A program made the translations under genes and the position numbers. Below the pieces are notes generated by a model. That model saw only the letters and a list, made by a program, of their open reading frames with translations, did not search any database and was not told the origin of the DNA. Below are positions 1 through 32,760 of a DNA stretch of 33,361 bases, piece after piece; the stretch's first letter is position 1; every line of letters begins with the position of its first letter. The stretch covers positions 168,883 through 202,243 of the forward strand of contig CAJINV010000026.1 in the NCBI GenBank assembly GCA_905178155.1, in the 5' to 3' direction. Source of the stretch: Amoebophrya sp. A120 (Eukaryota > Protista > Dinoflagellata).

Positions 1-3000
1 CCCCTCTGAATCCTCCCGTCGCCGCTCCGCCTACTCCGTACTGCAGGAGCGCGGGTGCTTTCGTCTTGTTCCCCGGATTATCAGATGGAAAAATGTCTGG
101 GTCTGGAAACTTGGAACTTGTGATGCTAACTTTGGACTCTTAGAGTCCAAAGTTAGCATCACAAGTTCCAAATTCTAGATTCTAGAAAAATTTGTATTGC
201 ATGACCAGCAAGAGGAGTCAAGTTTCTGCTACGCGGGGAGGCCATTTGTCATGCGGAATAGGCATCAATAAGCACTCGGAAAATCTGTGATGCCAGGGAA
301 TACATCACAGACGTCACGGGCCATGTAAAATCTGCATGACAAGTTCGGATCCTTCCAGACCCAGACATTTTTGCATTTGATACGGATGACATCATGATGA
401 ACTGGTGTTGTCCACCTCTCGTTCCGCATCTCGTCTTCTAATGCAAGTCTTGCATTACAAATCTTTCTTTTAAGGTAAATCCGCATTACAAATTTTATCT
501 CTCATGCTGAGGAAGTTTGTGATGCATTTATACGAGTACGATACTTTTGCAGTTCATAACTCTCGTTCCGCCAGCACTCCTATCCTGTGCAAAAGTATCG
601 TATTCGTATAAATGCAAGTCTTGCATTACAAATCTTTCTTTTAAGGTAAATCCGCATTACAAATTTTATCTCTCATGCTGAGGAAGTTTGTGATGCATTT
701 ATACGAGTACGATACTTTTGCAGTTCATAACTCCTGAGGTTGTAACTGCTGCTGTTTGGGGCGCCGCTGCTCTCCGCAACATTCATACTACTCCCCCGAC
801 CAACATCAGCCCCTGCGCGCGGCCCGAACGAATTTGTCCTGATCATGGCCTCCCGCACACTCCGATCTAACCAGGGATTCTGATCGTGAAACCGTTTGCG
901 TAGGCCCATCATCGAGCTCGTGGTGCTCCCAACGGTTTTTGTCGCGGACAACCTCTGCGAAGTAGAAGATTCCGGTGGACTACTGGTCGCGATCGAAGAG
1001 GGTCGTGCAGCTGGGCGAGTGTAAGAACTATGTGCTGGGAACAAAGGCGCGGCTGCTCCGGGCGGGGTGAGGAAAGAAGATGCAGGGTTGTTGACAGAAT
1101 TTGGCGGAAGATGGCCATGGCTAACATCTGCCTCCTCTTCTACATGGGTTTGTTCCTCATGCTCAACATCTTCGAACGCGATCCGACTCAACCTCCCCGC
1201 CGTGCTGTTCCGCAGAAACGCGGCGCCACCCGCGGTTTTGTACGCGGGGTTGGTTTATCAAATGCAAATGTGTCTGGATCTGGAAACTTGCGATGCTAAA
1301 ATGTGGATAATGGAAACACTTCCGAATGCAGTCCAGCATGACCACAACTATCCAGGACGCTTTCTCATAGGCAGTCCGCATGAGAACCTGCGTTCTTCTT
1401 GCTGCATGACAAAAATGGCTGCGACTTTTGCTTGTTATGCAATGCAGATATCCCAGGAATGTAAAGCTAGCATTACAAGTTCCAACTTTCCAGACCCAGG
1501 CTAGATATTTGCATTTGGTATGGTTTTGTACAGCAAAACCTGCCCGACGGGAAGCTCGTCCGGGGGCAGGTTGATCAGCTCTATCAGAAGGAAAAATCTC
1601 CCCACCCCATATCGAGACGAAGTTTCTCATGCTGGATTTCCGTACACAAATGCGCGCTGTCTTGCGATACCTACGGCATCGCAGCCGGATCCTCAGCCTA
1701 GGGCGGGGCGTTTGGGTCTAGTTGCTTAGCATTGCAAATGGCTGTCCTCGAGGCCCAACAGCATGGCAAATCGCTTCCATATGGGCGGGGAAGGCTTTGC
1801 ACTTGTCTTCATGCAAGACAGACGTGATTTGTGGCCTCAAATCAGCAAGACAAATTTTCGGAAACATGCCTTTTCAATATGGGGAGGGGAGATTTTTCCT
1901 GTCAATAAGCTCTTCAAAATCTTCGTTTTCCCCCCTGGATTTCAACACTTCCCGCCTCGTCCCCTGGACGTATGGATTGCAAATATGTCTGGGTCTAGAA
2001 GAGTGGAACTTGTAATGCTGTCTGCGAATTCTAAAAATATTTGTGTTGCATGAGCAGCAGGACGAGTCAGTTCTTGGCACGCGGAGAGAGCATAATTTCT
2101 CATGCGTAATTAGCATCAAGAAGCTTTCACAAAATCTGTGATGCTAGCACCAGCATCACAGACCTCACGGGTGGTCATGCAAAATGTGCATGACAAACCC
2201 CGACTTTTCCAGACCCAGACATTTTTGCAGTTGATAGGACGCCCCGTAGGTGTTTTTCCAAAAATTTTTCGTAGGTCCGCCAGCTGTAGTCGAATTTGCT
2301 GGTTAAAGAACAGTATCGAACGCAAAAATGTCGGGGTCTGGAAGGTTGCCAGGTTTGTCAAGCATATTTTGCATGACTCAGAATGTCTGTAATGCATGAT
2401 CTAGCATCACATATTTTTAGAGGCCTTCCCGATGCCTATCCCGCATGACAAATGCCCTCCCCGCGTAGCACAAACTGGGCTCCTCTTGCTGGTCATGCAA
2501 TACAGATTTTTTCAGAGTCCAAAGTTAGCATCACAAGTTCCAACCCTCCAGACCCAGACACATTTGCATTTGATAAACAGTGGGGGTATTCAAAATCAAC
2601 CATCAAGTCTGTCCAGGATTTCACCAACCCGGATAACAGCAAGCAGAGAACAAACAGCACGAAGAGAAACAGAAAAAGCGAAATCCACGGCATGTTTCCC
2701 CTATGCACTGCAAAAGTATCGCACTCGTATAAATGCATGACAAATTTCCGCAGCATGAGAAATAAAATTTGTCATGCGGATTTACCTTGAGAAAAAAATT
2801 TGTAATGCATGATTGCAATTACTACGAGTACGATGCTTTTGCATTGCATATCCCCACAACAGGTAGTCGTTCAACCCCAGCGGTCGGTACCAATATCAAA
2901 TGCAAAAGTGTCTGGGTCTGGGAAGATTGAACCTGTCTTGCGTGTCTGGCATTGCGGAAAAATCTGTATTGCATGAGCGGCAAAAGCAAAAAAAGCTCCG

Positions 3001-6000
3001 AACTTTCGTCGTGCAAAGTCGCAGCTTGTAATGCGTGCTACCAATGAGTAGAAAGCGTTTGAAAAATTTGTCATGCTTCACTGCACTTAAAGGCAAACCC
3101 AATCATGACCACTCAGCATTACAAGTTTCCAGACCCAGGCATATTTGCGTTTGATAACCAAACCCCGATCGCGATAAAGGCCGCTTCCCACGCGCCGATT
3201 TTCACAATCGCGATTTCCGCCCGCATATGAATTGCAAAAGTATCGCACTCGTATAAAAAATGCATTACAAATTTTTCCTCAGCATGAGAAATAATGAATT
3301 TGTAATGCTGATTTACCTATACGAAAAAAATTTGTAATGCATGATTGCAATACGAATACGATACTTTTGCACAGGATACCGCAGCCCCCGGTAGTAGCTG
3401 CTGTTTCCGACCAAGACGTGGCGGAATTTCAGCATCATTGACGCGCAGCACCAGATGTAGCAGATCAAAGCGAATAACCGGAGAAAGAGGGTAAGTATCC
3501 TGAGTAAAAACGTCCCCACACCATAGTCAACATGGAAAATCTGCTAGACAAATCAGCCAACTTTGGTTGTTTCGCATGACAAGTTTGTCCCCGTAGTGTA
3601 GTCCTGTTTAGCTAGTTCAGAAGCTGCATCACAGATCTGGCATATGATGCTATTTCTAGCATCACAAATCCCAAAACACGACCAGAAACTGCTTCTCATG
3701 GGTCTCCGCATCATCATCATCATGTAGTGGACACCCGCTCCCAGCGCCACAGGTCAAGGATCCCCTCCCCGGGGGGTGGGCGAGGAAGCACTTTCGGCGA
3801 CCTCAACATACAAAAGCCGAGCGCTACCACGGCAAGTCGCCCCAATAAAAGTACCAACCAGTCGGGAGCTACCCACCACACCTGATCAGCACAGCCCGGC
3901 CAGCTAGCCGAGCCCGACAGCCCAACATACAGAACGATCCAGGACCCGACCCATTTTACGCCATACGTTTTTGTTCTCACGGAAGAGACGACGCACCCCT
4001 TTGGGTTAAGGGGCGAGACTCTCCCTTAAGCCGCAACCCCACCCGGACAGGGGAGGCTGGACCATTTTTTTCAGCATGCAGATTTGCATGACAACTCTGG
4101 GGTGGGGATGTTTTTACACAGGATAGTAAGCGTCCAAAAGTTATCCCCGTTTTTGTTCGGTAGGAAGGGGGCGCACTTGATGAAATTATTGAAGCCGGAA
4201 TTGTACCAAAATTTGCCATCGTTGGTCAAGTTGTCGCAGTATTTGATCGGGTTGTAGTGGGCAAAGCTCGGTGGGATGCCCTGGGTTATCAAGGGAATGT
4301 TCGGTCCGGCCTGGTTTGGCTTCACCTTATCTTCTCCGATCACCACCGTGCCCGACGATCGGACGTACACATCGAAGCTCGCTCTTTGCACCAGCATCTG
4401 CCGCTCGAAGACCCATTCGAAAATGCCTTGATTCCAGTATTGTGACGAATAATCCCCCCCCCGTATCGGACAGCGGACTTGTGATGCTGGATTTGCGTAC
4501 GCATATGCGTTTGTATTGCTAGAAGGGCAAGAGACGCAGCTGTGGCCTTGTTTGCAGGCAATTTGTCATGCTGCTTTCCACTGCCAGTCTCCTCTAGTCA
4601 TGCTGAAGATGCAAGGCCTCTCCACGCCAGCCAGCACTACAGTGTCTACGTCTTTTGCATTCTAGCATGACAAAAGGATTTGCGGTCACAAATCAGCATC
4701 ACAAATTTCCAGTTTGAGTGTGGGGTGGGCAGATTTTTCATTTTGATATCCACCCGATCTCGCATCGCGCCCATAGGTCGAAAATGAAGCAGTATCAAAT
4801 GTAAAGATGTCTGGGTCTGGAAACTTGTGATGCTCTGTGGCGTATCATGAGGAAGCCACAATTGCTGGCTCAGCATGACAAGTTTCTGAGCTCCTAGGTG
4901 TTGCCTATTCTGCATGACAGACTGCGCTTCCGCATCACAGAAAAACGGAGCTCTTGGGTAACGCGCATGACAGATTTAAGAGTCATGCCAGACAAGCATG
5001 ACAGACATGAATTCTTCCAGACCCAGACATTTTTACACTTGATAAGCAGAGAAAGGAAACGACTCCGTTAAACCCGGCTATCCCAGTATGGTGAGCAAAA
5101 ACGTCCCCATCCCAGAGTCAAGATGGGAAATCTGCTACACAAATCGCCCGGCTCTGGCTGTTGCGCATGACAAATTTGGGCTCGCATTGTAGTCGTGCTT
5201 AGCTAGTGCAGCAGCATCACAGATGTAGCATACCATGCGGATTTGAGCATCACAAATATCAGAACACCAATAGAAACTGCTTCTCATGGGTTTCCGCATG
5301 AGAAAGAGAAACATATTCAGCATGCAGATTTGCATTACAACTCTGGGGTGGGGACGTTTTTACAAATGATACCCAGCAGCCCACCCGTGCCACGCGTCGG
5401 AAGTGAGAAAGGAAACGTTGCGGTTTCTTATGGAGGCGTCAGGATCAAAATCGACAAAGTTGAAATAAATAATTTGTGTTGCAAAAAACGGATACCAGTT
5501 GGCGCCCGGTTTTCAAGTGGCGCATGACAAATTGGGGTAGGACCGAGTTTCAGTTTGTCGTGCTGTTTGGGAAAGGAAGACGCTTCTTGTCATGCTACTT
5601 ACTTTATTAGCAGCTATATTTCTACCAGTCCACAGGCTTACAATCTGCCTCACTTGCCTACTCTGCAAGACAGGCACCTTGTGGGTTGCATTCTATGCAT
5701 CACAAGTTTTTCAACTTTCTCAATTTCGGTCCTGACACTCTCATATTTCTCAGGAGTAATTTTACCTCGTCGTCCGTAATGTCGTTCGGTAAATCGTAGG
5801 CCCAGTAATCCTTCCGCTTCTGTCTGGGGATAAACACGGAGAACATCAACCCTCCAACGAGCAAAAACACCCGGAGAATGTCGAAAGTGTATCGGAGAAA
5901 CGTCACAATTGGGTTAAACACTGCCGGCTGGTTCTGGCCGCACGCGTCGTCCTGCGCTGCTTGTCCCGCAGCGGCTCCGGCACCGGTGTCATCCGGCCCG

Positions 6001-7375
6001 TTCCCGGCCTCCTGGCAGGGGGCGGAGACCAAAGTGAGTTATCGCAAGAAAAAACTGTTTCACTGTGAACTTGTGATGCATAGAATGGAACACAGAACTA
6101 TTTGTCTTGCTACACCTGCAAGGCATTGGATTTTTAAGCATGTTTTCTCTTGGAAAGCGCGCATGGCAAATTTTCTGTGTCATCTGTAGCAAACTTGTGA
6201 CGCGGATCTTGCAAAACCATCACAGTGAAACAGATTTTTCGTGGGATATGAGTAGGTACGGCGGTAAAAAGTGCATCTCGAAGAAACTTACCTGCATGAA
6301 GAGCAAGCAGGCGACCAGCCAGGTACCCTTGAACACGCTAGACGGGGTTTCCTCTAGATCCGCCATCATCTCACTCATGTGCACTTCGCCGTAGGAAAGA
6401 ATGTTGTGGATGCAGATGGCTTTTTCTTCGTTGAGAAGCGCCTGCTCCTGCTTCAGAGCGTGTTCTAACTTCCTCCCCCTTTCCGTCTGCTGAAATTCTT
6501 GGTTTTGGAAAATGATTGGCAAATCCGTACCGGGGGTAGACTCGCCGGAAGAGGAGTGATCATCCGCAACCTCGTCGATCTGTTCAAGAAGAACGCGCGT
6601 TGACGTGTCGTTATGGAGCAGCCTCTCATGTTCATCTGGTGGTGGCAGCAAGCTGCTTGCTCCGTTTGTTCGATAGGCACCATTTGCCATGATTATACCA
6701 CTGTCCGGTAGATTGAGGTTAGCATCGTGGTCGAGTTGGGCGCTGTTGGTCGTGGGAAAATAGAGCTCGTCGTTGTCAAACAAGTGATTGTCTTCTCCAG
6801 CGGCAGCGACGGGACGAGGAGGTCCGAAGCCGCGTCCCCCGTTAGCATCCGCAGCCGCATTCATCGTCCGGGCTGCAACCCTGCGGCTGAAGAGCCCTAG
6901 GATTTTTTTCTGTTCCGTTTCCTTTTTGAGCTTGTAAATTTTCTCCTTCAATTTTTGGTCCCGTTCCCTCAAGTCGAAGTACCCGAAGGCGCGCATCAAA
7001 ATTCGACATTTTAGCGTTCCCCGCAAACTCTGGATTGTGAAAATGTCTGGGTCTGGAAGAATGCAAGTTTGTCATGCTTGTCTGGCATGGCTCGAGAATC
7101 TGTGTTGCATAGGCGCGAAAAGGCCCTCTTGCCTGTCATGCAAAACCGCAGTTTGCCATGCGGAATACGTAAAACATGGCAGCCAAAAAATTTGTCATGC
7201 ATAGGTGCGTATTGCAGTGCGTCTACCATTCACTTTTAGCATTACAAGTTTCCAGACCCAGACATTTTTGCAATCCATACCAACTCCGCAACGCACCCCG
7301 CATGCCGTAGAGTAGTAATGCTATGCCGACCAAAAGGGTGAACGAATTTCCAAAATTACGGAGAAAGTCCGTCAT
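1..7375 (-). CDS. Multi-pass membrane protein of unknown function, >=919 aa, 3' end beyond the window; split by 16 TIR/TSD elements and one duplication-derived intron
   Basis: First in-frame ATG at 7375 after TAA at 7478-7480 (MTDFLRNFGNSFTLLVGIALLLYGMRGALRS). Manual removal of each element plus one TSD gives one open frame. Example junctions: PYLL|TLVSAPC, KLLLR|NRNVSFLTSDAWHGWAAG|IAGFNGVVSFLC|FIFDLWARCEIGW|NQGIFEW, NFWTL|TLFLRLF, RGLR|AEIAIVKIGAWEAAFIAIGVW|YRPLGLNDYLLWG|NMPWISLFLF, EYPHC|SLTSKFDY, FEEL|INLPPDELPVGQVLLYKT|NPAYK, YNLRS|AGGTR|GGQHQFIMMSS|GEQDESTR. Spliced length is 2759 nt, with several hydrophobic segments. Confidence 0.88.
79..382. mobile_element. TIR introner, family A
   Basis: TATCAGATGGAAAAATGTCTGGGTCTGGAA...TTCCAGACCCAGACATTTTTGCATTTGATA; TSD CGGAT at 74-78 and 383-387. 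Confidence 0.93.
428..571. other. Intron-like segment made by local duplication of a family B element
   Basis: About 440-559 copies about 611-730. It is bounded by the 12-bp direct repeat CTCTCGTTCCGC (416-427, 560-571), and removing 144 nt restores the frame. Confidence 0.6.
581..729. mobile_element. TIR introner, family B
   Basis: TATCCTGTGCAAAAGTATCG...CGATACTTTTGCAGTTCATA; TSD ACTCC. Confidence 0.92.
1256..1520. mobile_element. TIR introner, family A
   Basis: Family A TIRs (right end GGTA); TSD TGGTT. Confidence 0.92.
1582..1907. mobile_element. TIR introner, family C
   Basis: TATCAGAAGGAAAAATCTCCCC...GGGGAGATTTTTCCTGTCAATA; TSD AGCTC. Confidence 0.92.
1971..2236. mobile_element. TIR introner, family A
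   Basis: Family A TIRs; TSD GGACG; reverse-complement sister of 23170-23428. Confidence 0.93.
2314..2575. mobile_element. TIR introner, family A
   Basis: Family A TIRs; TSD AACAG; opposite orientation to sister 79-382. Confidence 0.93.
2702..2850. mobile_element. TIR introner, family B
   Basis: TATGCACTGCAAAAGTATCG...CGATGCTTTTGCATTGCATA; TSD TCCCC. Confidence 0.92.
2894..3156. mobile_element. TIR introner, family A
   Basis: Family A TIRs; TSD ACCAA. Confidence 0.92.
3226..3378. mobile_element. TIR introner, family B
   Basis: TATGAATTGCAAAAGTATCG...GATACTTTTGCACAGGATA; TSD CCGCA. Confidence 0.92.
3496..4125. mobile_element. TIR introner, family D, with a nested insertion of about 350 bp
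   Basis: TATCCTGAGTAAAAACGTCCCCAC...GTGGGGATGTTTTTACACAGGATA; TSD GTAAG; extra sequence at about 3712-4063 relative to 5087-5371. Confidence 0.9.
4438..4748. mobile_element. TIR introner, family C (degenerate left TIR)
   Basis: Internal similarity to 9484-9794; TAT...ATA ends; TSD TCCAG/TCCAC. Confidence 0.85.
4793..5044. mobile_element. TIR introner, family A
   Basis: Family A TIRs; TSD AGCAG. Confidence 0.92.
5087..5371. mobile_element. TIR introner, family D
   Basis: TATGGTGAGCAAAAACGTCCCCA...TGGGGACGTTTTTACAAATGATA; TSD CCCAG. Confidence 0.92.
5429..5745. mobile_element. TIR introner, family E
   Basis: TATGGAGGCGTCAGGATCAAAATCGACAAAGTTGAAA...TTTCAACTTTCTCAATTTCGGTCCTGACACTCTCATA; TSD TTTCT. 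Confidence 0.9.
6040..6248. mobile_element. TIR introner, family F
   Basis: TATCGCAAGAAAAAACTGTTTCACTGTG...CACAGTGAAACAGATTTTTCGTGGGATA; TSD TGAGT. Confidence 0.92.
7029..7279. mobile_element. TIR introner, family A (left end TCT)
   Basis: Family A TIRs; TSD CAAAC/CCAAC. Confidence 0.85.
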
Positions 7376-7459
7376 TTTCGTAGTGTATCTATTTCTATTT
7401 TTATTTTGGCGAGTTAAAAATAAAAACGACTTGACGGGTTGTACTTGTTGTAAGGGTCG

Positions 7460-8085: not shown

Positions 8086-8583
8086 TTCAGTGTTGTTCAC
8101 AGGATGTTCACACCTATCTTCATCGGTCAAGATCTTGTTTTTCTTCTTGGTCGTTGCTACTCGGTTTCGCTTTTTTCTGTATCGTGTACATCGTACTACT
8201 ATCGTAGAGTCGCATGATGAAGTCCTTTTTTGGGGAATGTTTTTTTTACTTGTGTCTACCCGTTTTTTTGCCAATCGGCCAGTAGGTTTTAGTTCCGAGA
8301 TTCACACTTAGATAGACCCTGGAACATGTGAAACACACTACAACCTGTACAATGATGTTGTGAGCCGTTGGCTCAAGATTGAGCAAAACAATCAGGAAGA
8401 AGTTTTTTGTCACCCCCGGGCATACGCAATACAAACGTGTTCAAGTGGCAAGATCTACCGATCAACAGAGTTATGAGCCTCCGTATACAGTAAGCCACTT
8501 CTTGCATGCACCCCAAGAACACGAGTAAATCTTACGACATCTTTTCCCAGCAGAATAAGACACTATATGCATCAAAAGTAAAG

Positions 8584-8905
8584 ATGGTGCCACCTGAGAA
8601 TTCTCGTGCCCCGCAGAACAAGATTGGCGGCCTAGCCACCATAAACGCGGCGAAGTACGTGTACCTGGCCGGTTCCAAGGACCAGGTTTGGCAGATCTTC
8701 ACCCGCAAGGCCGGCGCCAGTGCGGTGAACGATCAGAACAAGCACCAGTTCTTGAAGGTCAACGAAGAATACTACTTCTTGAAGCTTGTCGCCAGGGTGG
8801 CGAACAACATCCGGGCCACCGAGGGGAACGTAGACCCGAACGAACTGAGCAAGGAGAATTTGAAGGAGCTGAAGCAGCAGGCGTTCGACCTGCTTGAAAA
8901 CAACG
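8584..8905 (+). pseudogene. Intronless coding-like gene fragment (MVPPENSRAPQNKIGG...QQAFDLLENN)
   Basis: GC3-rich codons for about 107 codons, then runs into a repeat fragment; no homology recognised. Confidence 0.4.
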
Positions 8906-23098: not shown

Positions 23099-26000
23099 TC
23101 AAATGTGCTCCGGCTCCTGCGGCGCGTCATGCTCCGGCTCTTCCGCCGCGTAGGTCTCCAGGTCGTAAGTATCAACTGCAAAAGTGTCGGGGTCTGGGAG
23201 AGTCGGGGCTTGTCATGCACATTTGCATGACCCGTGAGGTCTGTGATGCTGGTGCTAGCATCACAGATTTTTTGAGAGCTTCTTGATGCTAGTTACGCAT
23301 GAGAAATGCCCTCTCCGCGTGCCAAGAACTGACTCCTCTTGCTGCACATGCAACACAGATCTTTTTAGAATCCGCAGACAGCAGTACAAGTTCCACTCTT
23401 CCAGACCCAGACATGTTCCCCCTGCATAATAAGACGCGTCCTGCATCTTTTTCAGCCTCCGCCCGGCATTGTCGGCTGACCGAGAGGACTTCTGTATCAA
23501 CTGTAAAAATGTCTGGGTCTGGAAGAATGTGAACTTGTCATGCAGGTTTTCTATGACCCTTGAGGTGTGGAATGCGGGACCTAGCATGACAGAGGCTGTG
23601 AGGTCTCTTTCATGCCTATTCTGCATGAGAAACTGCCTTTAAACTTGTTCAAAAGTGGACCTCTTTTGGTAATCATGCAACACAGATTTTTGCATGATTC
23701 GGATTTAGCATGACAAGTTGCAATCTTCCAGACCCAGACATTTTTGCAATCCATATTCTGCCGCCCCGCCCGATAGCTGCGGGTACCCGCGGGTACCTTG
23801 GCAGCGTCGTAGCTGTGTTGATGTTTTTTGTTTATCACGCATGACCAGTATCTTAAGCTTAACAGACGGAATTTCGATTTTCTCATGCTCGAACGACATA
23901 TTTGTACATCATGTCAGATTGTTGACATTGACTGTAGCGGACTCCTATATATACCTGTTCTCGTACCCCCCAGCGTAGTACCCGGTTTGCACGTCATCCA
24001 ACGCCTGCGGCTATCAAATGCAAATATGTCTGGTGTTTTGTCTGGAAACAAGACCTTGATACAGCACGGGGAAGAGAACGACTTCAACTTTTTGAAGAAA
24101 CAAAAGTAAAAGAGAACTACGCTGATGCACTATGTAGAGAGAGACTAAAAGCATGCTATGATGTCCACCGGTGGAACTAACTACTGCTACTTATACTGTC
24201 ATGTCTGGGTCTGGAAGAATGCAATATGTCATGCAGATTTTCCATGACCCATGAGGTCTGAAATGCGGGGCCTAGTATGACAAAGTCTGCCAGGTCTCTG
24301 TCATGCCTATCCTGCATGAGAAATCCCCTCCCAACTTGGTCGAAAGTGGACAGCTTTTGGCACTGATGCAACACAGATTTTGGCATGATTCAGATTGAGC
24401 ATCACAACTTACTGTGGTCTTCCAGACCCAGACATATTTGCAATGCATAGCGGCTTGCGCTTCTTGCGGGAAGCCTCGTCCAGAGAGGTTATAACCCGCT
24501 CAGGTGTTACAATCTCAAACGTTACAATAGAATCTGGAATTTGTGTTGCAAGAAGTGCATGACCTACCCTACTCCCACAGGATTGCGCATGACAAGTTCT
24601 GGAGTCCCAATCCGCACTACAATCTGGCGAAATTTGTATTGCAAATAGTGGAACGCTGTCCGAGTCTGTCATGTTGGTCATGCAAGACAAATCTCAGATT
24701 CTATTGTAACGTTTGAGATTGTAACACCTGAGCAGGTTATAGAGGTGCGTCCGCGTTTCTGAGATCCAGATCTGTTTCCACGACCTTGCGCGTCGTAGGA
24801 AGATGAACCGTAGCCTGCGTAGTGGTCGTCGGCGTAAGATGAACCGTGGTTATAATTCCAATCGTCGTCATGCCAGTCGTCATCCCCTCCACCAACTTCA
24901 ATCTCCGCCATTTCAATTGCCTCCCCTTCCGCGTCGTGAAATTTGTGGTCTGGCGACGCCGTTGTAGAAGAATTATTTGTCGGGTCAGCAAATGTTGATC
25001 CCATCGGCTTCGGCAGGTTGTTTTTCATGTTTTCGTTCGCAGCTTTCATGTCGTAGGACACCAAGTCATTGGTCGTCATGATGCCCTCCCCGGTGGCGCC
25101 CGGGGCGTCCGCGGGCCCGAGGATATCGAATGCAAATATGTCTGGGTCTGGAAACTTGTGATGCTAAAATGTGCATGATGAAAGCACTTCCTCATGCAGG
25201 AAAGCATGACAAGCTTGCAGAACGCTTTCTCGTACGAACTCCGCATGAGAAACTGCGTTTCTGTCTGACATGAGACGAGGCTGCCACTTTATTTGTTGGT
25301 CATCATGCAATACAGATTTCACAGGAATGTAAGAACAGCATTACAAGTTCCAACTTTCCAGACCCAGACATATTTGCAATGCATAGAGGAGACCCTTGAC
25401 GGATTTGCGCTGGTCTCGTCCCGCCTCCTTGCCCTCGGACCGGAGAAGGGCGTCGTATCGTGTGTAAAAACCACAGGGCCCAGGAGCACACCAGAGTAAT
25501 CTTCAAGATAGGACGTTTGCTACATAAATCAGCAGGCTTTGGCTGTTGCGCATAACAAGTTCTTTGGGTACACTCTGGTGTAGTTGTAGTGGTCGTGTTT
25601 GGCTAGTACATTAAAGCCGCATCACAAAATAGAATCTAGCTGCTCCCTATCCTGATTAGAGCAGGACAAAGTTCTTGTACCAAGCAGCATGGGAAAGTGC
25701 TGCTCATGAAATTGCGTGCATGAGAAACATTTTAGGCATGCAGATTTGCATGACATCTAACTCTGGGCAGGTCGTGTGGGCCCCGGTTTTTCCTCAGGAT
25801 ACGTGGCAGTACAAAATCGCGTTGGTACTGTAAACGATCAGCATCTGCACAAACTGGAAGATGACGGCACAGGCACAGCCGACAAAGATTCCGGTAATAT
25901 CAAATGCAGAAATGTCTGGGTCTGGAAACTTGTGATGGTGCAAGTCAGTGATCAATAAGTGAACTGTAATGCGCAGCCGAGCATGACAAGTTTTTTTCGT

Positions 26001-29000
26001 GCTTCTGTGCCGCCAATTCCGCATGAGAAACTGCGTTTTTGCATGACACGCGAGAGAGGCTGTTCGTGGCCACGCAATACAGATTGCAGAGTCATGCCAG
26101 ACTAGCATGTCAAATCTGGCAATCTTCCAGACCCAGACATATTTGCCTTTGATATGTAAACAAACCGTGCAAAACGTTGTTTTCGTCCAGATCCTATGCA
26201 TTGCAAATACCGATCCGGGTCTGGAAGGATGGAACTTGTCATGGTACCTTTGGATTCGTTTTAAAATGTGTATTGCATGAACAGCAAAAGACATCCAGTT
26301 TTTTGCTACGCGGAGAGGGCATTTCTCGTGCGGTATGGGCATCAGAAAGTCCTCGCAGAGTCTGTGATGCTACGGCTTGCATCACAGACATCATCGGGCA
26401 GGCAAAATCTGCATAACAAACTCCAGCAAGCTTCCAGACCCAGACGTATTTGCATTTGATAAATCCTTGATGGCATTCCAGTCGGCGATATCAAATGTAA
26501 AAATGTCTGGGTCTGGAAGATTGCAACTTGTGATGCTGTCTCTACATTCTAAAAAAATCTGTATTGCATGAGTAGCAAACGGAATGCAATTTTTGCTACG
26601 CTGAGAAGACATTTGTCATGCGGAATAGGCATCAAGAAGCCCTCAAAAAATCTGTATTGCTAGGGTATGCATCACAGACATCATGGCTCATGCAAAACGT
26701 GCATGACAAGTGTCAGAATCTTCCAGACCCAGACATTTTTACATTTGATACGCGATCAGGATGAGCAGGATCAAGCCGAAGATGGGCCCAAAGCCGAGGC
26801 CGATCACGAACATTATCGCAAGAAAAAACTGTTTCACTGTGAACTTGTGATGCAGAAAATGGAGCACAAAACTATTTGTCTTGCTACACCTGCATAGAGC
26901 ATTGGAGTTTCAACCGTGTTTTCCCTTTTGGAATCGCGCATGGCAAATTTTCTGTGTCATGTGTATACAAACTTGTGATGCGGTTCTTGCAAAATCATCA
27001 CAGTGGAACAGTTTTTTCTTGCGATAAACATCCACATAAGGATGATGAGAACGAAGAGAACAAACACGCTCACGTCAAAATTGTCGTTTCCGAAGACGCC
27101 CTGTTCGATTTGGTTATCCATGTAGACCCAAGCCATCATGCCCTATCAAACGCAAAAATGTCTGGGTCTGGAAGATTGCGAGATTTGTCATGCTTGTCTG
27201 GCATGACCAAAAAGTTTGTGATGCGTGTCCAAGGAGGGACCCTTTTGCCTGTCATGCTTGTCATGCGAAAAACGCAACACAAAGAAGCGCAGATATTTAT
27301 CATGCTTGCCTGTGCATTACAGAGCATTCACTGTTCCCAACGCAGCATTACAAGTTTCCAGACCCAGACATATTTGCAATCCATATGCCCATGCCGGTCG
27401 CAACCAGCACCCGGTGCACCGTAAAAGTGGACGTCAGTGCGTAGTCCTGCACGGCTAAACCCAGCACGCCCTGGTTGCTATCGTCCTGAAACAGGTTAAA
27501 CACTTTCATCGCCGTGGCGCAAATCGGGCCGGAGTGAATCGTATGAACTGCAAAAGTATCGTACTCGCATAAATGCATTACAGATTTCCTCAGCATGAGA
27601 AAAAAGATTTGTAATGCGGGTTTACCTTGACAAAAAGATTTGTAATGCATGATTGCAATACGAGTACTATACTTTTGCACAGGATAAATCGTGTGACCGA
27701 CGACCAAGTACTTGGTGAAGGGTTCGACGAGACACTTGATTCCCATCCAGAGCTATCAAATGTAAAAGTGTCTGGGTCTGGAAGGTTGGAAGACTTGTCA
27801 TGCAGGTTTTCCATGACGCTTGAGGTCTGTAATACATGACCCAGCATGACAGCTTCTTCTCGACCTCTATCATGCCTCGTCTGCATGAGAAAGTCCCTCT
27901 CAGCTTGGTCAAAAGAGGAGAGCTTTTGGTAATCATGCAACACAGATTCTTGCACTATCGAGAATTAGCATGACAGGTTGCATTCTTCCAGACCCAGACA
28001 TTTTTACAATCCATAAGAGCGCGAAGCACAACAAGTCCGTGCAGCAAAACCCGAAATTCCAACAACAGCAAAGAATCGGGTTTGCGGCCACGTTCTCCGC
28101 CCGCCGGCGGATCTCGTACGTCAACGAAACAATGATGGACGCGAACATGTTAACCCCGGCAGAGGTCGTGTACGCCATGGAAAACCCGACGGCTCCGGGG
28201 TTGCGAATCGCCGGTGTGTTTCCGTACAGCTTTGCTGCGGTTCCCGAGTGGAAGGTCCAGTTGGCGACGCCGGTTGTGCAAATGATGAGAATCACCTGGC
28301 GCAGAAAGATTACCAGCGGAAAGAAGACGAGCCAGAGCATGGTCTGACAGAAAACACTCGCGCTCGTTGTCTTCAGCTCACACAGGCTGGCGCTGTTGTT
28401 TGTGGGGTTCGCGTGCCGAATAAGCGTTCCAGTATACCGCCACTCCACCCAATTTCCGGACTCGATGAACCCAACGAGCCAAAAGGCGAGAAAACCGCCG
28501 AAAACCAAAAACTGCAGCATGGAAAACAATATCACGTCTTTGGCTTTGTTCAGACACGACATGGCCTTGCTCGCACTGTCGGCCGCTTCGGAGACTTGCT
28601 TGAAGTAAAGAATGGTCACCACGGTGACTACCACAGCGGGAATCATATCAAATGCAAATATCGATCTGGGTCTGAAAGATTGCAGGAGTTTGTCATGTAT
28701 CTACTTCTGGATCACGCAACTGGTCCCTCGTGCTGCACGCAAAAGCATCACAGGATTTGCGCACGCCTCCTGATGTCTATCCCACATGAGAAATCCCCTA
28801 TTTGCGTAGCAAGAAATGGGAAGCTTTTGGTGCTTCTGCAATACAGATTTTTGTCTAGTCCAGACTTAGCATGACAAGTTCCAATTCTTCCAAACCCAGA
28901 CAGATTTCCAACTGATAAATCAGCAGGTACCATAAATGTTTCGGGTCGACGCAGAATAGCGCAATCATGGCGATCACACCCAGGGCGATGGTGCCAAAAA

Positions 29001-32000
29001 TCATCACCTTCGGGGCGTAGTAAAGCGCCAACAGCCACAAAACCAGCAGCCAGGTGAAGGCGAGAAAAGAGATCAGCGGCACCTCCCACTGCTCCGCCAT
29101 CGTTTCCCACACCGTCTTCCGATCGTCGCTCGCGCTCAGTTATCCTGTGCAAAAGTATCGCACTCGTAGTAATCGCAATTATGCATTACAAATCGTTTTC
29201 CTAAGGTCAATCAGCATGAGAAATTTCATTTGTAATGTTTCGCAAATTTGTAATGCGAGTTCTACTAGTACGATACTTTTGCACCGCATATCAGCCGCCG
29301 CCGCAAGTGCCGCGCTTCTTGCAGCAGCCGCTTCGCCTGCAGCCGTTTTTGCAAGTGCCGCTCTTCCAGTTCCGCCCGCTGTTGTAGTTCTTCCTCCCCG
29401 TACGAACTAGGCAGGAACTTGAAATCTTCATGGCTTTCGAGTTCGTGCTATGCATTGCAAATATGTCTGGGAGGTCTGGAATAAACTTGTAATGCTGAGT
29501 TGCGTAGCATGAGGAGGCCAAGAATGATGGCCCAGAATGACAAGTTTCCGAGCTTCTAGGTGTAGTTGCCTACACTGCATGACAAACTGCGTTTCAGCAT
29601 CACAGAAAAATCGGCCTTTTGAGTAATCGGTGCATGACAGACTTGAGAGTCTTGCTAGCCGAGCGAGACAAATTTCGCATTCTTCCAGGAGACCGCCCAG
29701 ATCCATATTTGCAGTTGATACGTGCACTTGTTGCAGTAATTGGCGGATTCTCAAATGGCCTGCATCTCCGCGCTCCTGCAAATCGTCTTCCTCACCACCA
29801 GGAGCGACGTTATGCGTTGCAAATATGTCTGGGTCTGGAAACTTGTGATGCTAATTTATGAATTGCGGGGACACGGCAATAGGCAGCCACGCATGACAAG
29901 TTTCTGGGCTCCTATGTGTTTCGCTTTCCGCATGACAAACTACATTTTTGCATGACAGGCAAGAGGGTCTTTTGCTGCTCACGCATTACAGGTTCAAGAA
30001 TCATGTGAGACAAGCATGACAAACATCTGCATTCTTCCAGACCCAGACACTTTTGCATTTGATAGACGTCCTCCCCCGACAAAAGAACTCGGGGATTTTT
30101 TACGCATTGGTAATTGCTCATATCGCACGAAAAAACTGTTTCACTGTGAACTTGTGATGCATAAAATGAAACACAGAAGCATTTGTCTTGCTACACATGC
30201 AAGACAACGGATTTCTAGCTGTGTTTTCCCTTAGGATTCCCGTATGACAGATTTTCAGTGTCATGCGTAACAAACTTGTGATGCAGATTTCGCACAACCA
30301 CCACAGTGAACCAGTTTTTTCGTGGGATAGCTCATGTCGAGAGTGTAGTCCCACTGGCACCAATCGCACCCAATGCCGTTCGAAAGGACAGCAGCATAAT
30401 AATTACAGCGGTACGCGCCCATCGCACCTCCCCCGGGGCAGATGCAACCCGTCGACGGTGCTATGACAGTGCACAACTCCTCCTCCCCCTCATTTGTCGT
30501 GCGAAATCCCAACTCCAGTCGCTGCATTGTGGCACTGTGTGCATGACAAAAAATTCCGGAGGGGGCCAAAAAGTACTACATGATCAGGCACTACGTAGAT
30601 TTGTCCATGCATAGGCTCCACATGTGGTGCGCGGGTGTTTGTATTGCTGTTCATGTCATACATAGAAGTGGGAGGGGGAGTTGTGCCCTCTCATAGGTGC
30701 GACCGTGCTTGTAGAAGTCGAGGCTGAATCGGGAACGCATTGCATCGTAAGGAAAAATCCCCCCGCCCCATATCGAAAAGGAAATTTGTGATGCTGATTT
30801 GTGGCCACTGCGTACACAGCAAACGGCACTCCTGCGGCGCATTGTAAGTACAGCGAGTCTGTCACGCGTTTTCGCATATGCCAGACTTGCTTCTCATGCT
30901 CAGTTGCTAGCCGGATGCGTACCCGAGTGGGCGTAGAACATGCCGCCACGCTCTTGCTGCAATAGATGAAAGCTCCTTTGTGTACACAAATCCAGCAACA
31001 CAAATTGTCTTTTGAATATGGGGTAGGGGCTTTTTTCACGTTGATACATTGGTAAAGGTTAGGTGAGTTACTGCGTGTGTAGCCGATATTACAGCCTCCA
31101 CACCCGACTCCGTTCGTCAGCGTGCCGTAGACACTTCTGCACTATCAAATGCAAAAATGTCTGGGTCTGGAAGAATGCAACTTGTGATGCTGCATTAGCA
31201 TTTGGATGTCTAAAACTAAAATTAAAAGAATTGTGTTGCATGAGCAGCAAAAGGAGTCTAATTTTTGCTACGCGGTAGTAGTAGTAGTCACCATTTGACT
31301 CCTGGCGGGTCGGCGTTAGAACAGATTTAGCCTCTGCGAATACAGCCTGGGCGTTAGAACAGATTTAGCCTCTGCCAATACCACCTGGGCGCTAGAACAG
31401 GTTTAGCCTCTGCCAATGCCCCTAGGTGGATATCCGATCCACTTCCTAACTACCACCCGGCCGCAACCGCAATACCGCTATCGATTGCTTACGCGTATCT
31501 ACGGCCAGTGGGCGTGACGTGTGGCAGACCCATCTTACCATCCAAGCCCGCAAGCAAGGCGGAGCTTCGGAGTAGCCTTGAAGGGTTGGTCTTACAAACT
31601 TGTTCGCAATCATACTTCTGTGTACGCGCAGAGGGCATTTGTCATGCGGGATAGGCATCAAGAATCCCTGAAAAAAATTGTGACGCTAGGGCATGCATCA
31701 CAGACATCATGGCTTATGCAAACCGCGCATGACAAGTCTCAGAATCTTCCAGACCCAGATCGATTTTTGCATTTGATAGGCACACACTGCTAGTGAGCGG
31801 AGTTCCATTCGGACAGGTGCAGATACCATAACCGGGACTGCTAACGCATTGCATCGTGGCCTGACTCACTGCGTAGTTGGGATCGCAGTAGTCGCACCCG
31901 ATGCCGTTTGTCAGCGAGCCCATGCTGGTGTACATGCCGCAAAATGAGTTATCCTGAGTAAAAACGGGGCCCGCACACCAGAGTCAAGATGGGATGAAAT

Positions 32001-32760
32001 CTGCTAGACAAATCCACCAGCTTTGGTTGTTTCGCATGACAAGTTTCGATCCTCGTAGTGTGATCCTCGATTTAGCTAGTTCAGCAGCATCACAGATCTA
32101 GGACATGATACTGGTTCTAGCATTACAACAAATTCCCAAACACGACAAGAAAATACTTCTCATGGGGCGCCGCATGAGAAACCTTTTTCGCATGTAGATT
32201 TGCATGACAACTCTGGGGTGGGAACGTTTTTACTCAGAATATGAGTCGGTGAGCGGAGTTCCATTCGGGCACGTGCAGGTCGCCGTGGGCGCCGGCGACG
32301 GCGCATATCAACTGCAAATATCGATCTGGGTCTGGAAGTAGAGTGTAAACTTGTCATGCAGGTTTTCCATGACCCACGAGGTCTGGAAATATTCAAATGC
32401 GGGACCTAGCATGACAGACTCTGCGAGGTGGTCTCTGTCATAGTACTTTTCCTGCATGAGAAACTCCCTCCCAACGTGCTCGAAAGTGGACACCTCTTGG
32501 AAGACTCATGCAACACAGAGGGCTTTTGTAAGATTCAGATTTAGCATGACAAGTTAGCGCCCTACTTCCAGACCCAGACATTCTTGCATTTGATAGCGCA
32601 GGGGTTCCCCCGCCGATGTTGGCAACGCATTGGTAATTGCTGATGTCGAGCGCGTAGCCGGCGTTGCACAAAGAACAGCCGATTCCACCCTGCAGGCTCG
32701 GTTGCATCATTCCGCAGGTGTAGTCGATCATCGGCACTCCATTCGGGCAGGTGCAAGAAC
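23099..32760 (-). CDS. Choline transporter-like (SLC44/CTL/Pns1 family) membrane protein with Cys-rich CxCPNG repeats; >=1007 aa, 5' end not in view
   Basis: Removing 23 elements (each plus one TSD) and one GT-AG intron (23813-23954) gives 3026 nt of open frame ending in TGA at 23099-23101. CTL-like segments: ICTTGVANWTFH, AYTTSAGVNMFASIIVSLTYEIRRR, CCCWNFGFCCTDLLCFALWMGIKCLVEPFTKYLVVGHTIHSGPICATAMKVFNLF, IVYSTNAILYC. The family was assigned from remembered motifs, not from a search. Confidence 0.87.
23170..23428. mobile_element. TIR introner, family A
   Basis: TSD GTAAG/ATAAG; empty site in the paralog at about 19750. Confidence 0.93.
23495..23755. mobile_element. TIR introner, family A
   Basis: TSD TTCTG; empty site in the paralog at about 19811. 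Confidence 0.94.
23813..23954 (-). other. Canonical GT-AG spliceosomal intron
   Basis: Minus strand AG|GTATAT...CACAG|C; removal joins YEN-S-YDAAKV in frame; same position in the paralog (19868-20003). Confidence 0.82.
24012..24449. mobile_element. TIR introner, family A, with a nested 167-bp insertion
   Basis: TSD GCGGC; empty site at about 20056; insert 24034-24200 is flanked by ATGTCTGG repeats. Confidence 0.92.
24490..24741. mobile_element. TIR introner, family H
   Basis: About 47-bp near-perfect TIR TATAACCCGCTCAGGTGTTACAATCTCAAACGTTACAATAGAATCTG; TSD GAGGT. Confidence 0.94.
25124..25385. mobile_element. TIR introner, family A
   Basis: Family A TIRs; TSD GAGGA. Confidence 0.93.
25456..25801. 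mobile_element. TIR introner, family D-like (diverged)
   Basis: TATCGTGTGTAAAAACC...GGTTTTTCCTCAGGATA; TSD CGTCG/CGTGG. Confidence 0.85.
25898..26154. mobile_element. TIR introner, family A
   Basis: TSD GGTAA/TGTAA. Confidence 0.92.
26195..26461. mobile_element. TIR introner, family A
   Basis: TSD GATCC/AATCC. Confidence 0.92.
26489..26750. mobile_element. TIR introner, family A
   Basis: TSD GGCGA/CGCGA; only 27 nt from the previous element. Confidence 0.92.
26814..27026. mobile_element. TIR introner, family F
   Basis: TSD AACAT. Confidence 0.93.
27144..27385. mobile_element. TIR introner, family A
   Basis: TSD TGCCC. Confidence 0.93.
27542..27686. mobile_element. TIR introner, family B
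   Basis: TSD AATCG. Confidence 0.93.
27754..28015. mobile_element. TIR introner, family A
   Basis: TSD AGAGC. Confidence 0.93.
28646..28917. mobile_element. TIR introner, family A
   Basis: TSD AATCA. Confidence 0.92.
29141..29290. mobile_element. TIR introner, family B
   Basis: TSD TCAGT/TCAGC. Confidence 0.92.
29449..29720. mobile_element. TIR introner, family A
   Basis: TSD CGTGC. Confidence 0.92.
29811..30064. mobile_element. TIR introner, family A
   Basis: TSD GACGT. Confidence 0.93.
30121..30329. mobile_element. TIR introner, family F
   Basis: TSD GCTCA. Confidence 0.93.
30462..30695. mobile_element. TIR introner, family I
   Basis: TATGACAGTGCACAACTCCTCCTCCC...GGGAGGGGGAGTTGTGCCCTCTCATA; TSD GGTGC. 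Confidence 0.9.
30743..31046. mobile_element. TIR introner, family C (left end CAT)
   Basis: CATCGTAAGGAAAAATCCCCC...GGGGCTTTTTTCACGTTGATA; TSD CATTG. Confidence 0.9.
31143..31778. mobile_element. TIR introner, family A, with a nested 348-bp insertion
   Basis: TSD TGCAC/GGCAC; insert 31275-31622 lies between TACGCG repeats. Confidence 0.9.
31950..32241. mobile_element. TIR introner, family D
   Basis: TSD TGAGT. Confidence 0.92.
32306..32595. mobile_element. TIR introner, family A
   Basis: TSD GCGCA. Confidence 0.93.

Follow-up and report, generated by a model that had tools for sequence, protein, structure and literature searches.

Introner elements that split genes in a contig of Amoebophrya sp. 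A120 are probably removed from pre-mRNA as non-canonical introns

The window, meaning the whole analyzed stretch of 33,361 nt (Amoebophrya sp. A120, contig CAJINV010000026.1, positions 168,883-202,243, forward strand), contains 40 TAT...ATA inverted-repeat elements of 145-636 bp each, which make up 33% of its length. With a probability of about 0.9, they are the introner elements already described for A120, namely non-autonomous terminal-inverted-repeat (TIR) transposons that are removed from pre-mRNA as non-canonical introns. The A120 introners (Farhat et al. 2021, BMC Biol 19:1, PMC7789003) are marked by TAT, seven less-conserved nucleotides and at least three As together with 5-bp direct repeats, have no splice consensus and a predicted hairpin, and account for 29,850 repeated introns, or 17% of the genome. 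They fall into strain-specific families, and genes carry tens of these introns each (PMC7789003); the A120 elements were treated again as introners by Gozashti et al. 2025 (PMC12130899). What distinguishes the present elements from those of Farhat et al. (2021)? Nothing essential: the genome and the elements are the same, and the termini in the window read TATSNNNNGNAAAAA. The elements, their 5-bp repeats and the lack of a splice consensus were already known from that work. The first-pass annotation had cited Amoebophrya introners as a comparison; the window is in fact that published A120 case itself.

A strict scan for TAT...ATA with identical 5-nt flanks and termini complementary at at least 18/30 positions detected 28 elements in the window, whereas none appeared in any of 20 dinucleotide-shuffled versions. 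When a single repeat mismatch or gapped arms were tolerated, and two elements recognized by eye or through RNA (4438-4748 and 30743-31046) were included, the count rose from 28 to 40, which recovers the number of TIR elements with 5-bp repeats originally reported. The flanking repeats are perfect at 32/40 elements and have one mismatch at 8/40; as had been claimed, they show no consensus over the 40 sites. Across the genome, a search for the family A terminus gives 23,064 hits and a control pattern gives 0. GCATGACAARTT arrays are present in every element family, a common feature that the window adds to the published description. A U-rich tract, the complement of the A-run, lies 11-16 nt before the element 3' end in either orientation, and both orientations are represented (8 vs 12 in family A, 2 vs 3 in family B), all within minus-strand genes. 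Predicted folds show end-to-end pairing of 21-39 pairs in 40/40 elements (median z -6.2); the hairpin is a prediction that follows automatically from inverted repeats, and covariation cannot separate an RNA need from a transposase need.

The strict scan returned the family A elements 1971-2236 (repeat GGACG), 2314-2575 (AACAG), 2894-3156 (ACCAA), 4793-5044 (AGCAG), 23495-23755 (TTCTG), 24012-24449 (GCGGC), 25124-25385 (GAGGA), 27144-27385 (TGCCC), 27754-28015 (AGAGC), 29449-29720 (CGTGC) and 29811-30064 (GACGT). The relaxed scan added 1256-1520 (TGGTT; right end TAC.. in place of TAT), 23170-23428 (GTAAG/ATAAG), 25898-26154 (GGTAA/TGTAA), 26195-26461 (GATCC/AATCC), 26489-26750 (GGCGA/CGCGA; arms 30/30 matching), 28646-28917 (AATCA) and 32306-32595 (GCGCA); RNA contig pieces begin exactly at 28918 and 32596. 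Family A also includes 79-382 (CGGAT; scan) and the 636-bp element 31143-31778 (TGCAC/GGCAC), which has an internal insertion and is skipped in an RNA contig. Family B comprises 581-729 (ACTCC), 2702-2850 (TCCCC), 3226-3378 (CCGCA) and 27542-27686 (AATCG) from the strict scan and 29141-29290 (TCAGT/TCAGC), which is skipped in an RNA contig. In family C, the strict scan found 1582-1907 (AGCTC; arms ..CCCCACCCCATA) and 9484-9794 (CCTCG); the other members are 4438-4748 (TCCAG/TCCAC) and 30743-31046 (CATTG), the latter having C instead of T as its first base and being detected from the RNA contig only. Family D consists of 3496-4125 (630 bp; GTAAG), 5087-5371 (CCCAG) and 31950-32241 (TGAGT) from the strict scan and 25456-25801 (CGTCG/CGTGG) from the relaxed scan. 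All family E elements came from the strict scan: 6040-6248 (TGAGT), 26814-27026 (AACAT), 30121-30329 (GCTCA) and 22447-22655 (GCTCA), which lies in a duplicated gene 3 fragment and matches element 30121 in site and repeat. Three elements are singletons, namely F (5429-5745; TTTCT; strict scan), G (24490-24741; GAGGT; arms 29/30 matching; fold z -18) and H (30462-30695; GGTGC), which has no A-run terminus and yet is removed in an RNA contig.

The window also provides three empty sites as an addition to the published account. A paralogous copy of the gene 3 3' end (19328-20090, minus strand) is without elements 23170, 23495 and 24012, and carries at the corresponding positions a single ATAAG (19750-19754), a single TTCTG (19811-19815) and a single GCGGC (20057-20061), respectively. 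These three paralog sites show that element insertion creates the 5-bp duplication.

Removal of each element plus 5 nt opens three minus-strand frames that together contain 36/40 elements: 961 codons (32794->23948) with 21 junctions, 434 codons (10563->8946) with 1 junction and 878 codons (7071->531) with 14 junctions. If nothing is removed, or if the cut takes +0, +1, +3, +4, +6, +7 or +10 nt, frames reach at most 255-477 codons; the long frames open at +5 and at its phase equivalent, +2, alone. One repeat copy is kept at 36/36 testable sites. The first-pass annotation held that the frame is restored at all 40 sites; this stands for the 36 junctions in the long frames and for 23170 and 23495 in a short C-terminal frame, and the other two elements (22447, in the duplicated gene fragment, and 79-382) lie outside these frames. 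Its further observations were reproduced: element-plus-repeat lengths are not multiples of 3 at 29/40 elements (including 154, 331 and 271), no exon is shorter than the 22 nt of 26488-26467, and when the cut is slid through the repeat, 9484 is the sole site that yields GT-AG, while 581 and 26195 are the two that yield GA-AG.

Gene 3 (23948-32794, minus strand; 22 exons, 21 elements) encodes a choline-transporter-like protein whose N-terminal part is Cys-rich. Exon 28023-28643 matches PF04515 (E 2e-9), and in the alignment with P0001, the ortholog from A25, 8 gene 3 exons are colinear, the 22-nt and 35-nt exons included. The short C-terminal frame (23102-23890, minus strand; ...EEPEHDAPQEPEHI*), which is interrupted by elements 23170 and 23495, is open through both junctions once element plus 5 nt is removed and may represent the last exons of gene 3; the paralog has this frame uninterrupted at 19620-19870. 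Gene 2 (8946-10488, minus strand), split by element 9484-9794, encodes a 409-aa protein with no assigned function. The gene 2 model, with the element and one repeat removed, is identical over all 409 aa to the deposited A120 protein P0008 ('unnamed protein product [Amoebophrya sp. A120]'), which shows 100% identity to gene 2 exon 1; this match supports the assignment of the window to A120. Gene 1 (531-7071, minus strand; 15 exons, 14 elements; 878-codon frame) encodes a predicted membrane protein of ~850 aa that had no match in a Pfam search; its start is probably the ATG near 6996-7000, and its 3' end is uncertain.

Are the elements removed from RNA or from DNA? Contigs of run X6, which is probably RNA (the label is a guess), join 29135|29291 (155 nt skipped = 150 + 5; TCAGC carried), 30456 | 42-nt exon | 31047 (across elements 30462 and 30743) and 31138|31780 (641 nt skipped = 636 + 5; TGCAC carried), with 0 other letters at these joins. 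Four gene 3 junctions are confirmed in this manner, 1 junction is supported by the deposited protein, and the other 31 are supported by frame restoration and ortholog colinearity. One of the skipped segments, element 30743-31046 plus its repeat (309 nt), is in frame and stop-free. Raw RNA reads from 2026 with an identical species label failed to map (2 and 4 reads), so the RNA support is at the level of contigs. Contigs of run X1, a single DNA sample, bridge 28917|28918, 29290|29291, 29720|29721, 30695|30696, 30742|30743 and 31949|31950, with a depth of 21-38 at these six element-exon borders and an exon-only depth of 28-30. Because the X6 contigs skip the elements and the X1 contigs retain them without loss of depth, RNA removal is favored over DNA elimination. 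The first-pass annotation had allowed for either; its RNA option is upheld, and ciliate-like DNA elimination is unlikely. Precise removal without GT-AG, as it had claimed, is supported by the frames, the RNA contigs, the deposited protein and the ortholog. Removal occurs in both element orientations, with unrelated termini and with arbitrary junction sequence. Moreover, the exon-proximal base of each repeat copy is found in the mRNA at both RNA-resolved imperfect repeats. The junction falls inside the repeat on both sides, an addition from this window that is based on one imperfect repeat per side.

We propose that short non-autonomous TIR transposons insert into genes, duplicating the 5-bp target site, and that each element is transcribed within the pre-mRNA and then lost from the RNA as a non-canonical intron. 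The inverted repeats may pair in RNA to form a long hairpin that juxtaposes the two repeat copies. A machine would then cut at fixed offsets from the hairpin base, within the repeat on both sides, and the exons would be joined so that exactly one repeat copy stays. In the literature to 2026, we found no paper that settles the removal mechanism, in agreement with the first-pass annotation; the 'dedicated machinery' that it invoked is neither shown nor excluded. Two catalysts are weighed below, and the remaining probability falls on others.

The catalyst could be the major spliceosome, permissively adapted so that it needs neither U1 nor fixed splice-site dinucleotides, for which the hairpin just presents the ends and a lariat is formed; we put this at somewhat short of even odds. 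A120 has nearly all spliceosomal proteins as well as U2, U4, U5 and U6, but no U1, and canonical introns constitute ~37% of A120 introns, and 15% of these canonical introns also have direct and inverted repeats (Farhat 2021, PMC7789003). The U-rich tract before the element 3' end in either orientation also counts for the spliceosome. A precedent is found in Fritillaria borealis, whose transposon-derived introns, as summarized from Henriet et al. 2019 in PMC11282704, resemble the window elements in inverted repeats, target-site duplications, species-specific positions and non-GT-AG borders, and are reportedly removed by the spliceosome. However, the Fritillaria introns in that summary retain mostly AG-AC or AG-AT borders, whereas the window elements favor no dinucleotide and their junctions fall in an arbitrary 5-nt target without consensus. 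Spliceosomal introners (Gozashti 2022, 2025; Roy 2023), present in Micromonas, Aureococcus, Polarella and Symbiodiniaceae, are likewise intron-creating transposable elements, often with target-site duplication, but they carry or co-opt canonical GY-AG, whereas GT-AG is readable at 1/40 sites in the window. Element H also argues against the spliceosome, as it is removed without the A-run terminus. The one-copy outcome at every site would need a hairpin-set ruler, and to our knowledge such a ruler is used by no described spliceosome.

Alternatively, and more tentatively, removal may be independent of the spliceosome: a structure-specific, structure-measuring RNA endonuclease would cleave the two repeat copies, both of them single-stranded, at defined distances from the base of the hairpin, after which the exons would be joined by an RNA ligase. 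Such a process might be likened to tRNA or HAC1/XBP1 splicing and to the suspected removal of euglenid nonconventional introns. It accommodates junctions that are wholly sequence-independent and lie within the repeat on both sides, an outcome that differs neither between orientations nor between unrelated termini, and the retention of exactly one repeat copy at all 36 testable sites. Euglenid nonconventional introns (Milanowski, Guminska et al.; PMC11282704) have non-canonical borders, pairing inverted repeats near their ends, duplication-like junction repeats and circular RNAs with full-length ends; they likely originate from short non-autonomous transposons, and their removal mechanism is not known either. 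They differ in that CAG/CTG pairing occurs at +4..6 and -8..-6 and in that they are excised as circles (PMC11282704), whereas the window elements combine TAT/ATA termini and a strict 5-nt repeat with long arms; the two lineages are unrelated. The endonuclease-ligase route lacks an enzyme candidate, cleavage intermediates, circles and a demonstrated bulge-helix-bulge geometry. We know of no nuclear mRNA endonuclease/ligase system of such scale.

Ciliate internal eliminated sequences are TA-ended, transposon-derived and precisely removed from coding DNA by a domesticated transposase. Excision of the window elements from the DNA of a nucleus or life stage that is expressed, which the RNA would merely reflect, would explain the TA at both element ends and the single repeat copy left, as in precise transposon excision with repair, and one DNA sample was examined. 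This explanation is very improbable: ciliate sequences are cut from DNA, whereas the window elements stay in DNA at unique-exon depth across six borders and are absent from the RNA contigs, and the published Illumina and Nanopore DNA assembly retains ~29,850 such introns. We also know of no nuclear dualism in Amoebophrya. The reading that the genes are dead transposon targets with meaningless restored frames has insertion density and nothing further in its favor, and is refuted by the restoration of 961-, 878- and 434-codon frames solely in the +5 phase, the Pfam domain, the colinear A25 ortholog, the transcript-based deposited protein and the RNA contigs.

The true 5' end of gene 3 is beyond 32761. 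The RNA contig match breaks at 32760, with 93 more letters unplaced, and a further intron starts at 32762-32799 with the family-E-like terminus TATCCCACGAAAAAAG; its far end was sought in the window and not found. Two large integrase-containing elements with introner ends were considered as autonomous drivers and rejected; a further addition from this work is that in both examples of such an 'inverted repeat + integrase' structure, retrotransposons are nested in a short element. Finally, a putative extra (41st) element of family A, read from the sequence at 7031-7279 (repeat GTTGG/GTTTG; one degenerate end, ..CCAGA), would lie immediately upstream of the gene 1 ATG.

The coding regions of the window are split by discrete inverted-repeat elements that run from TAT to ATA and are flanked by a 5-nt direct repeat. 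A strict scan, which demanded TAT and ATA 60-900 nt apart, the same 5-nt sequence on both flanks and complementarity at no fewer than 18 of the 30 terminal bases, identified 28 elements in the window and none in 20 dinucleotide-preserving shuffles. Ten more were recovered once one repeat mismatch or gapped arms were permitted, and two were added by sequence reading and RNA contigs: 4438-4748 (repeat TCCAG/TCCAC) and 30743-31046, which has C for T at its first base. The resulting 40 elements, the number counted in the first-pass annotation, range from 145 to 636 bp and account for 33% of the window. Their repeats, of which 32 are perfect and eight contain a single mismatch (elements with left coordinates 4438, 23170, 25456, 25898, 26195, 26489, 29141 and 31143), have no consensus. 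As the same annotation had stated, sliding the cut within the repeat yields GT-AG at one of the 40 sites (9484) and GA-AG only at 581 and 26195. By sequence, the elements fall into families A (20 elements), B (five), C, D and E (four each) and three singletons, with copies 66-96% identical. The termini of families A-E (37 of the 40 elements) conform to TATSNNNNGNAAAAA, and the three singletons retain TAT and lack the A-run; element H (30462-30695) has unrelated termini without an A-run. No transposase gene is found within the elements and their copy number is high, with 23,064 genome-wide copies of one family A terminus against none of a control pattern. More introner-type elements lie beyond the three split genes, namely 11507-12020 (514 bp, repeat GTCGA) and, at 12389, the right end of a family D element.

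Deletion of each element together with 5 nt opens three minus-strand frames: gene 3, with 961 codons in 22 exons (32794 to 23948); gene 2, with 434 codons (10563 to 8946); and gene 1, with 878 codons in 15 exons (7071 to 531). The longest frame is 255-477 codons when nothing is deleted, when the element alone or the element with two repeat copies is deleted, or when 1, 3, 4, 6 or 7 extra nt are removed. The frames are opened only by 5 extra nt and its phase equivalent of 2, and they were never attained when 0-10 extra nt were drawn at random for each site. Element-plus-repeat lengths are distributed over the three residue classes modulo 3 (11, 17 and 12 elements), so that most insertions would cause a frameshift if retained, and the shortest exons measure 22, 35 and 42 nt. 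All figures in the first-pass annotation were reproduced, the lengths that are not multiples of 3 and the exons of about 22 nt included. The further claim that the frame is restored at all 40 sites holds for the 36 elements located within the three long frames. Of the other four, 23170 and 23495 split a short C-terminal frame (...EEPEHDAPQEPEHI*) whose paralog counterpart is unbroken, 22447 lies in a duplicated fragment of gene 3, and 79-382 lies beyond the end of the 878-codon frame at 531. The observation that precisely bounded elements split coding frames is confirmed.

To identify the products, exons were searched singly, and the joined frames were translated and compared separately. The gene 2 exon 9802-10563 matches a 409-aa 'unnamed protein product [Amoebophrya sp. 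A120]' with 100% identity, and this deposited protein, P0008, is identical over its full length to the gene 2 model from which element 9484-9794 and one repeat have been removed. Gene 3 encodes a choline-transporter-like protein with a PF04515 match on exon 28023-28643. Its sole clear relative among 1.84 billion representatives is a 783-aa protein of strain A25 (CAD7974338.1, 44% identity), which in tblastn is colinear with eight consecutive gene 3 exons, including those of 22 and 35 nt. Searches with the A25 ortholog, whole or as residues 615-705, found no deposited A120 protein for gene 3. At the gene 1 3' end and in the frame across 79-382, no convincing additional intron was recognized, and no intron with a 5-nt repeat connects gene 3 to the C-terminal frame. 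Two tandem family B copies, 22 nt apart, occupy 430-729 at the ambiguous 3' end of gene 1; the left terminus is missing from the first copy (about 430-558), and CTCGTTCCGC occurs at 418-427 and again at 559-568. The stretch that separates the gene 3 stop (23948) from the conserved C-terminal frame, 23822-23950, contains GCATGA motifs, and its paralog counterpart (19860-19990) has a degenerate family-B-like arm. It may represent an introner that has decayed until neither inverted repeats nor a direct repeat can be clearly seen, and may match the published 'singleton' type of non-canonical intron.

Removal of the elements was compared with sequencing reads and contigs over 26800-32799. The run X6, whose RNA label is a guess, comes from a study other than that of the DNA run and covers 29% of the sampled words. 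One X6 contig joins 29135 to 29291 with no other letters, a skip of 155 nt that equals the 150-nt element plus 5. Another consists of 30330-30456, 42 unplaced letters, 31047-31138 and 31780-31876 with nothing else, and thereby skips element H, element 30743-31046 next to the 42-nt exon, and the 636-bp element 31143-31778 plus 5 nt. Both element H, which lacks the A-run, and 30743, which begins with C instead of T, are therefore absent from RNA. In addition, two X6 contig pieces begin precisely on the first base past another element, one at 28918 and the other at 32596. Removal is thus supported at five junctions, four of them resolved by X6 contigs and the fifth by the deposited protein, and the remaining junctions are deduced from the reading frames. 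The claim of precise removal without GT-AG signals is supported. Raw RNA runs X9 and X10 (2026, same species label) were uninformative, with 2 and 4 reads mapped. An RNA contig breaks at 32760, beside a family-E-like terminus (TATCCCACGAAAAAAG at 32762) for which the sequence through 33361 shows no matching far end or repeat. In gene 3, intron 1 may be long, or only one of its ends may be recognizable.

Two imperfect repeats place the cut. At 29141 (TCAGT/TCAGC) the mRNA reads TCAGC, and at 31143 (TGCAC/GGCAC) it reads TGCAC. In each case, the exon-adjacent base derives from that exon's own repeat copy, so the intron is neither 'repeat + element' nor 'element + repeat', and the junction lies within the repeat. 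If a single register holds for all elements, 1-4 nt separate the junction from the hairpin on each side, with one case per side. A signal of selection on the repeat was considered and is not claimed: seven of the eight mismatches in the window are outermost (binomial P about 0.009), yet in 35 elements elsewhere mismatches are evenly spread, with four of six central. In folds of the sense RNA, the ends are paired in all 40 elements, with 21-39 pairs linking the initial and final 45 nt and a median z of -6.2. Arm positions 1-3 always match, as the scan demanded TAT/ATA there; positions 4-7 are the least complementary, with 20-35 of 64 elements mismatched, and good pairing extends from position 9 onward. 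In the predicted structure, UAU/AUA forms a closing helix of 3 bp, a long stem follows, often after a 4x4 internal loop, and the two repeat copies are single-stranded tails at the helix base. Within the minus-strand genes, family A elements lie in both orientations (8 versus 12), as do family B elements (2 versus 3). Removal is therefore independent of element orientation, and it is likewise independent of junction sequence and terminus family.

Which machinery removes the elements? The first-pass statement that the mechanism is not established still stands, and the enzymatic step is divided between a spliceosome and an endonuclease with a ligase. In outline, the inverted repeats would pair in the pre-mRNA and bring the two repeat copies side by side, and cleavage and joining at fixed offsets from the helix base would leave one copy behind. 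A permissive spliceosome that operates without U1 has close to an even chance of being responsible: Farhat et al. (2021, PMC7789003) did not find U1 and report a nearly complete spliceosomal protein set, and Fritillaria supplies a precedent. Our genome search matched neither U1 nor U2 snRNA, but U2 is published as present and was missed as well, so the U1 negative is uninformative and carries no weight. A structure-specific endonuclease acting with a ligase is a candidate that we rate as somewhat less probable; it would accommodate an arbitrary junction sequence and the need for a ruler and has a parallel in euglenids, where circular products are formed.

A second feature shared by the elements lies in their interiors. 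All families, regardless of their termini, contain one motif (consensus GCATGACAARTT) in arrays, with 1-8 copies and in both orientations. The 40 elements contain 192 occurrences of GCAT[GCT]A (78 sense, 114 antisense), with one or more in each, GCATGA/TCATGC is 20 times denser in element interiors than in exons, and the exact 12-mer has 23,724 genome copies versus 7 for a control. The motif is restricted to one RNA orientation in six elements and to the other in six, an arrangement more consistent with a double-stranded DNA site than with an RNA signal. It could be a subterminal repeat to which a protein, for example a transposase, binds. We found no mention of it in the consulted sections of Farhat et al. 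(PMC7789003), to which it is an addition, and a literature search returned primer sequences only.

A speculative model is a spliceosome-independent pathway that would measure structure: an endonuclease would cut within both repeats at fixed distances from the hairpin, a ligase would join the exons, and the GCATGACAARTT arrays common to all families would be putative binding sites of a mobilizing or recognizing factor. We assign this complete model a probability of about 0.3. If it is true, nuclear mRNA introns would here be removed by a separate system, convergent with the nonconventional introns of euglenids.

The first-pass annotation had left open whether removal takes place on RNA or, as in ciliates, on DNA. 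The DNA run X1, a single sample whose joint table was swamped by repeats, contains both exons and elements. Six element-exon borders are spanned by its contigs, each by 31 or more letters to either side; the depth is 21-38 there and 28-30 in exon-only sequence. Together with the skips in X6, this indicates that the DNA retains the elements at full stoichiometry and that the RNA is without them. The earlier interpretation is thus partly supported: removal occurs at the RNA level, and elimination from DNA is very improbable given the six borders bridged at full depth. That the genes are dead targets of transposons is practically excluded.

The origin of the 5-nt repeats is recorded in a tandem paralog of the gene 3 3' end (19328-20090), from which three elements (23170, 23495 and 24012) are absent. 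The paralog has ATAAG, TTCTG and GCGGC once each at the exact sites where the gene 3-side copy has an element between two copies, which directly demonstrates insertion with a 5-bp target-site duplication. Therefore, the product of removing an element with one repeat is the pre-insertion sequence. Next to the paralog, an approximately 1.16-kb TAT...ATA element (about 20092-21251, arms TATGGCGATGGCAGAAACTTTTTGC / TATGGCAGTGGCAGAAACTTTTTCC) is flanked not by a 5-bp repeat but by a 77-bp direct exon duplication (20014-20090 = 21252-21328, 96%). Further along, 22042-22745 is a gene 3 fragment copy joined across a chimeric family A element (22056-22390), whose left flank and end correspond to 26181-26274 (100%) and whose right end and flank correspond to 30030-30419 (94.6%); about 3.7 kb of gene 3 is absent between the two halves. 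This arrangement suggests that the fragment copy arose by rearrangement through repeated elements.

Comparison with known systems places the elements in a published class. Farhat et al. (PMC7789003) describe A120 'introner elements' with inverted repeats at their ends (TAT, about 7 less-conserved nt and at least three As), direct repeats of 3-5 nt over the exon/intron borders ('Direct repeats of 5 bp' in Fig. S19) and non-canonical borders without consensus, and count 29,850 repeated introns, or 17% of the assembly. Gozashti et al. (2025, PMC12130899) revisited A120 introners, with tens in a single gene. The window elements share with the system of Farhat et al. the termini, 5-nt repeats, consensus-free borders, removal from RNA, lack of a transposase and high copy number, and TATSNNNNGNAAAAA fits the published terminus. 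Amoebophrya introners had been offered earlier as a comparison; the resemblance was right, but the identity was missed, as P0008 and the matching termini make the window the published A120 case. The elements are therefore the type case published for this genome, already known and not a new kind of object. They differ from the spliceosomal introners of Micromonas, Aureococcus and Polarella, which obtain GT/GC-AG from the element or the duplication, and from ciliate IESs, which have an element-free DNA form, whereas the window elements are kept in X1 DNA. The end pairing and duplication-like junction repeats of euglenid nonconventional introns recur here as an architectural likeness only. The euglenid CAG/CTG pairing at +4..6 and -8..-6 is absent from the window elements, whose arms are least complementary at positions 4-7; euglenid introns are excised as circular RNA. 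tRNA and HAC1-type splicing are marked by a bulge-helix-bulge or paired stem-loop cleavage motif and by 2',3'-cyclic phosphate intermediates; the predicted fold of the window elements has a UAU/AUA helix, often a 4x4 loop, and a long stem.

With tens of thousands of transposon insertions in coding sequence, removed to the exact nucleotide without splice-site sequence, this intron system is among the strangest known, and its removal mechanism is a question of high interest. The locus is a good and compact place to address it: three genes contain 36 junctions, some elements are separated by micro-exons as small as 22-42 nt, the eight imperfect repeats would fix the position of the cut to a single nucleotide given mapped reads, and three natural empty sites are present.

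An autonomous partner was sought among 12 genome loci that match the Pfam integrase rve (PF00665), three of which looked bracketed by family A/B termini and identical 5-bp flanks; none proved to be autonomous. The first (L031:148-8499; G000:C1:15330547-15338898) as a whole resembles an 8.35-kb inverted-repeat element with 5-bp flanks GACGA. It is instead a Copia-type LTR retrotransposon nested in a 150-bp family B introner; the retrotransposon has LTRs at 248-471 and 8220-8441 (224-bp, 96-98% identical), TG..CA ends, its own 5-bp duplication CTGAG and a 905-aa integrase-SH3-RVT_2 frame. The second (L011:7096 to L023:7290; G000:C2:9169095-9179289) is a family A introner split by a 9.9-kb insertion with a poly(A) end and a 17-bp target duplication (TTTAGCATGACAAGTTC), inside which lie an LTR pair (276 bp, 95%) and the integrase. 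The third (L018/L030) is two separate short elements that share a flank. On this structure, the two large integrase-bearing elements are short elements with nested retroelements and do not qualify as autonomous partners. Similar caution may be due for the reported A120 inverted-repeat elements with Copia/Gypsy-like frames (PMC12130899), and it bears on claims that inverted-repeat elements with integrase or reverse transcriptase are intron-generating transposons in A120.

Two other features of the window are recorded here. A plus-strand frame of 352 codons (8584-9865) runs antisense to gene 2 and is also open across the removed element; it has no Pfam match, and its first approximately 125 codons (8584-8958), outside the gene 2 coding sequence, have a protein-like look. 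Between genes, 14092-18805 is a tandem array, not an introner, in which a 296-bp unit recurs about 16 times; the array has repeated 177-codon plus-strand frames, adjacent copies are 93% identical, and identity declines with distance.
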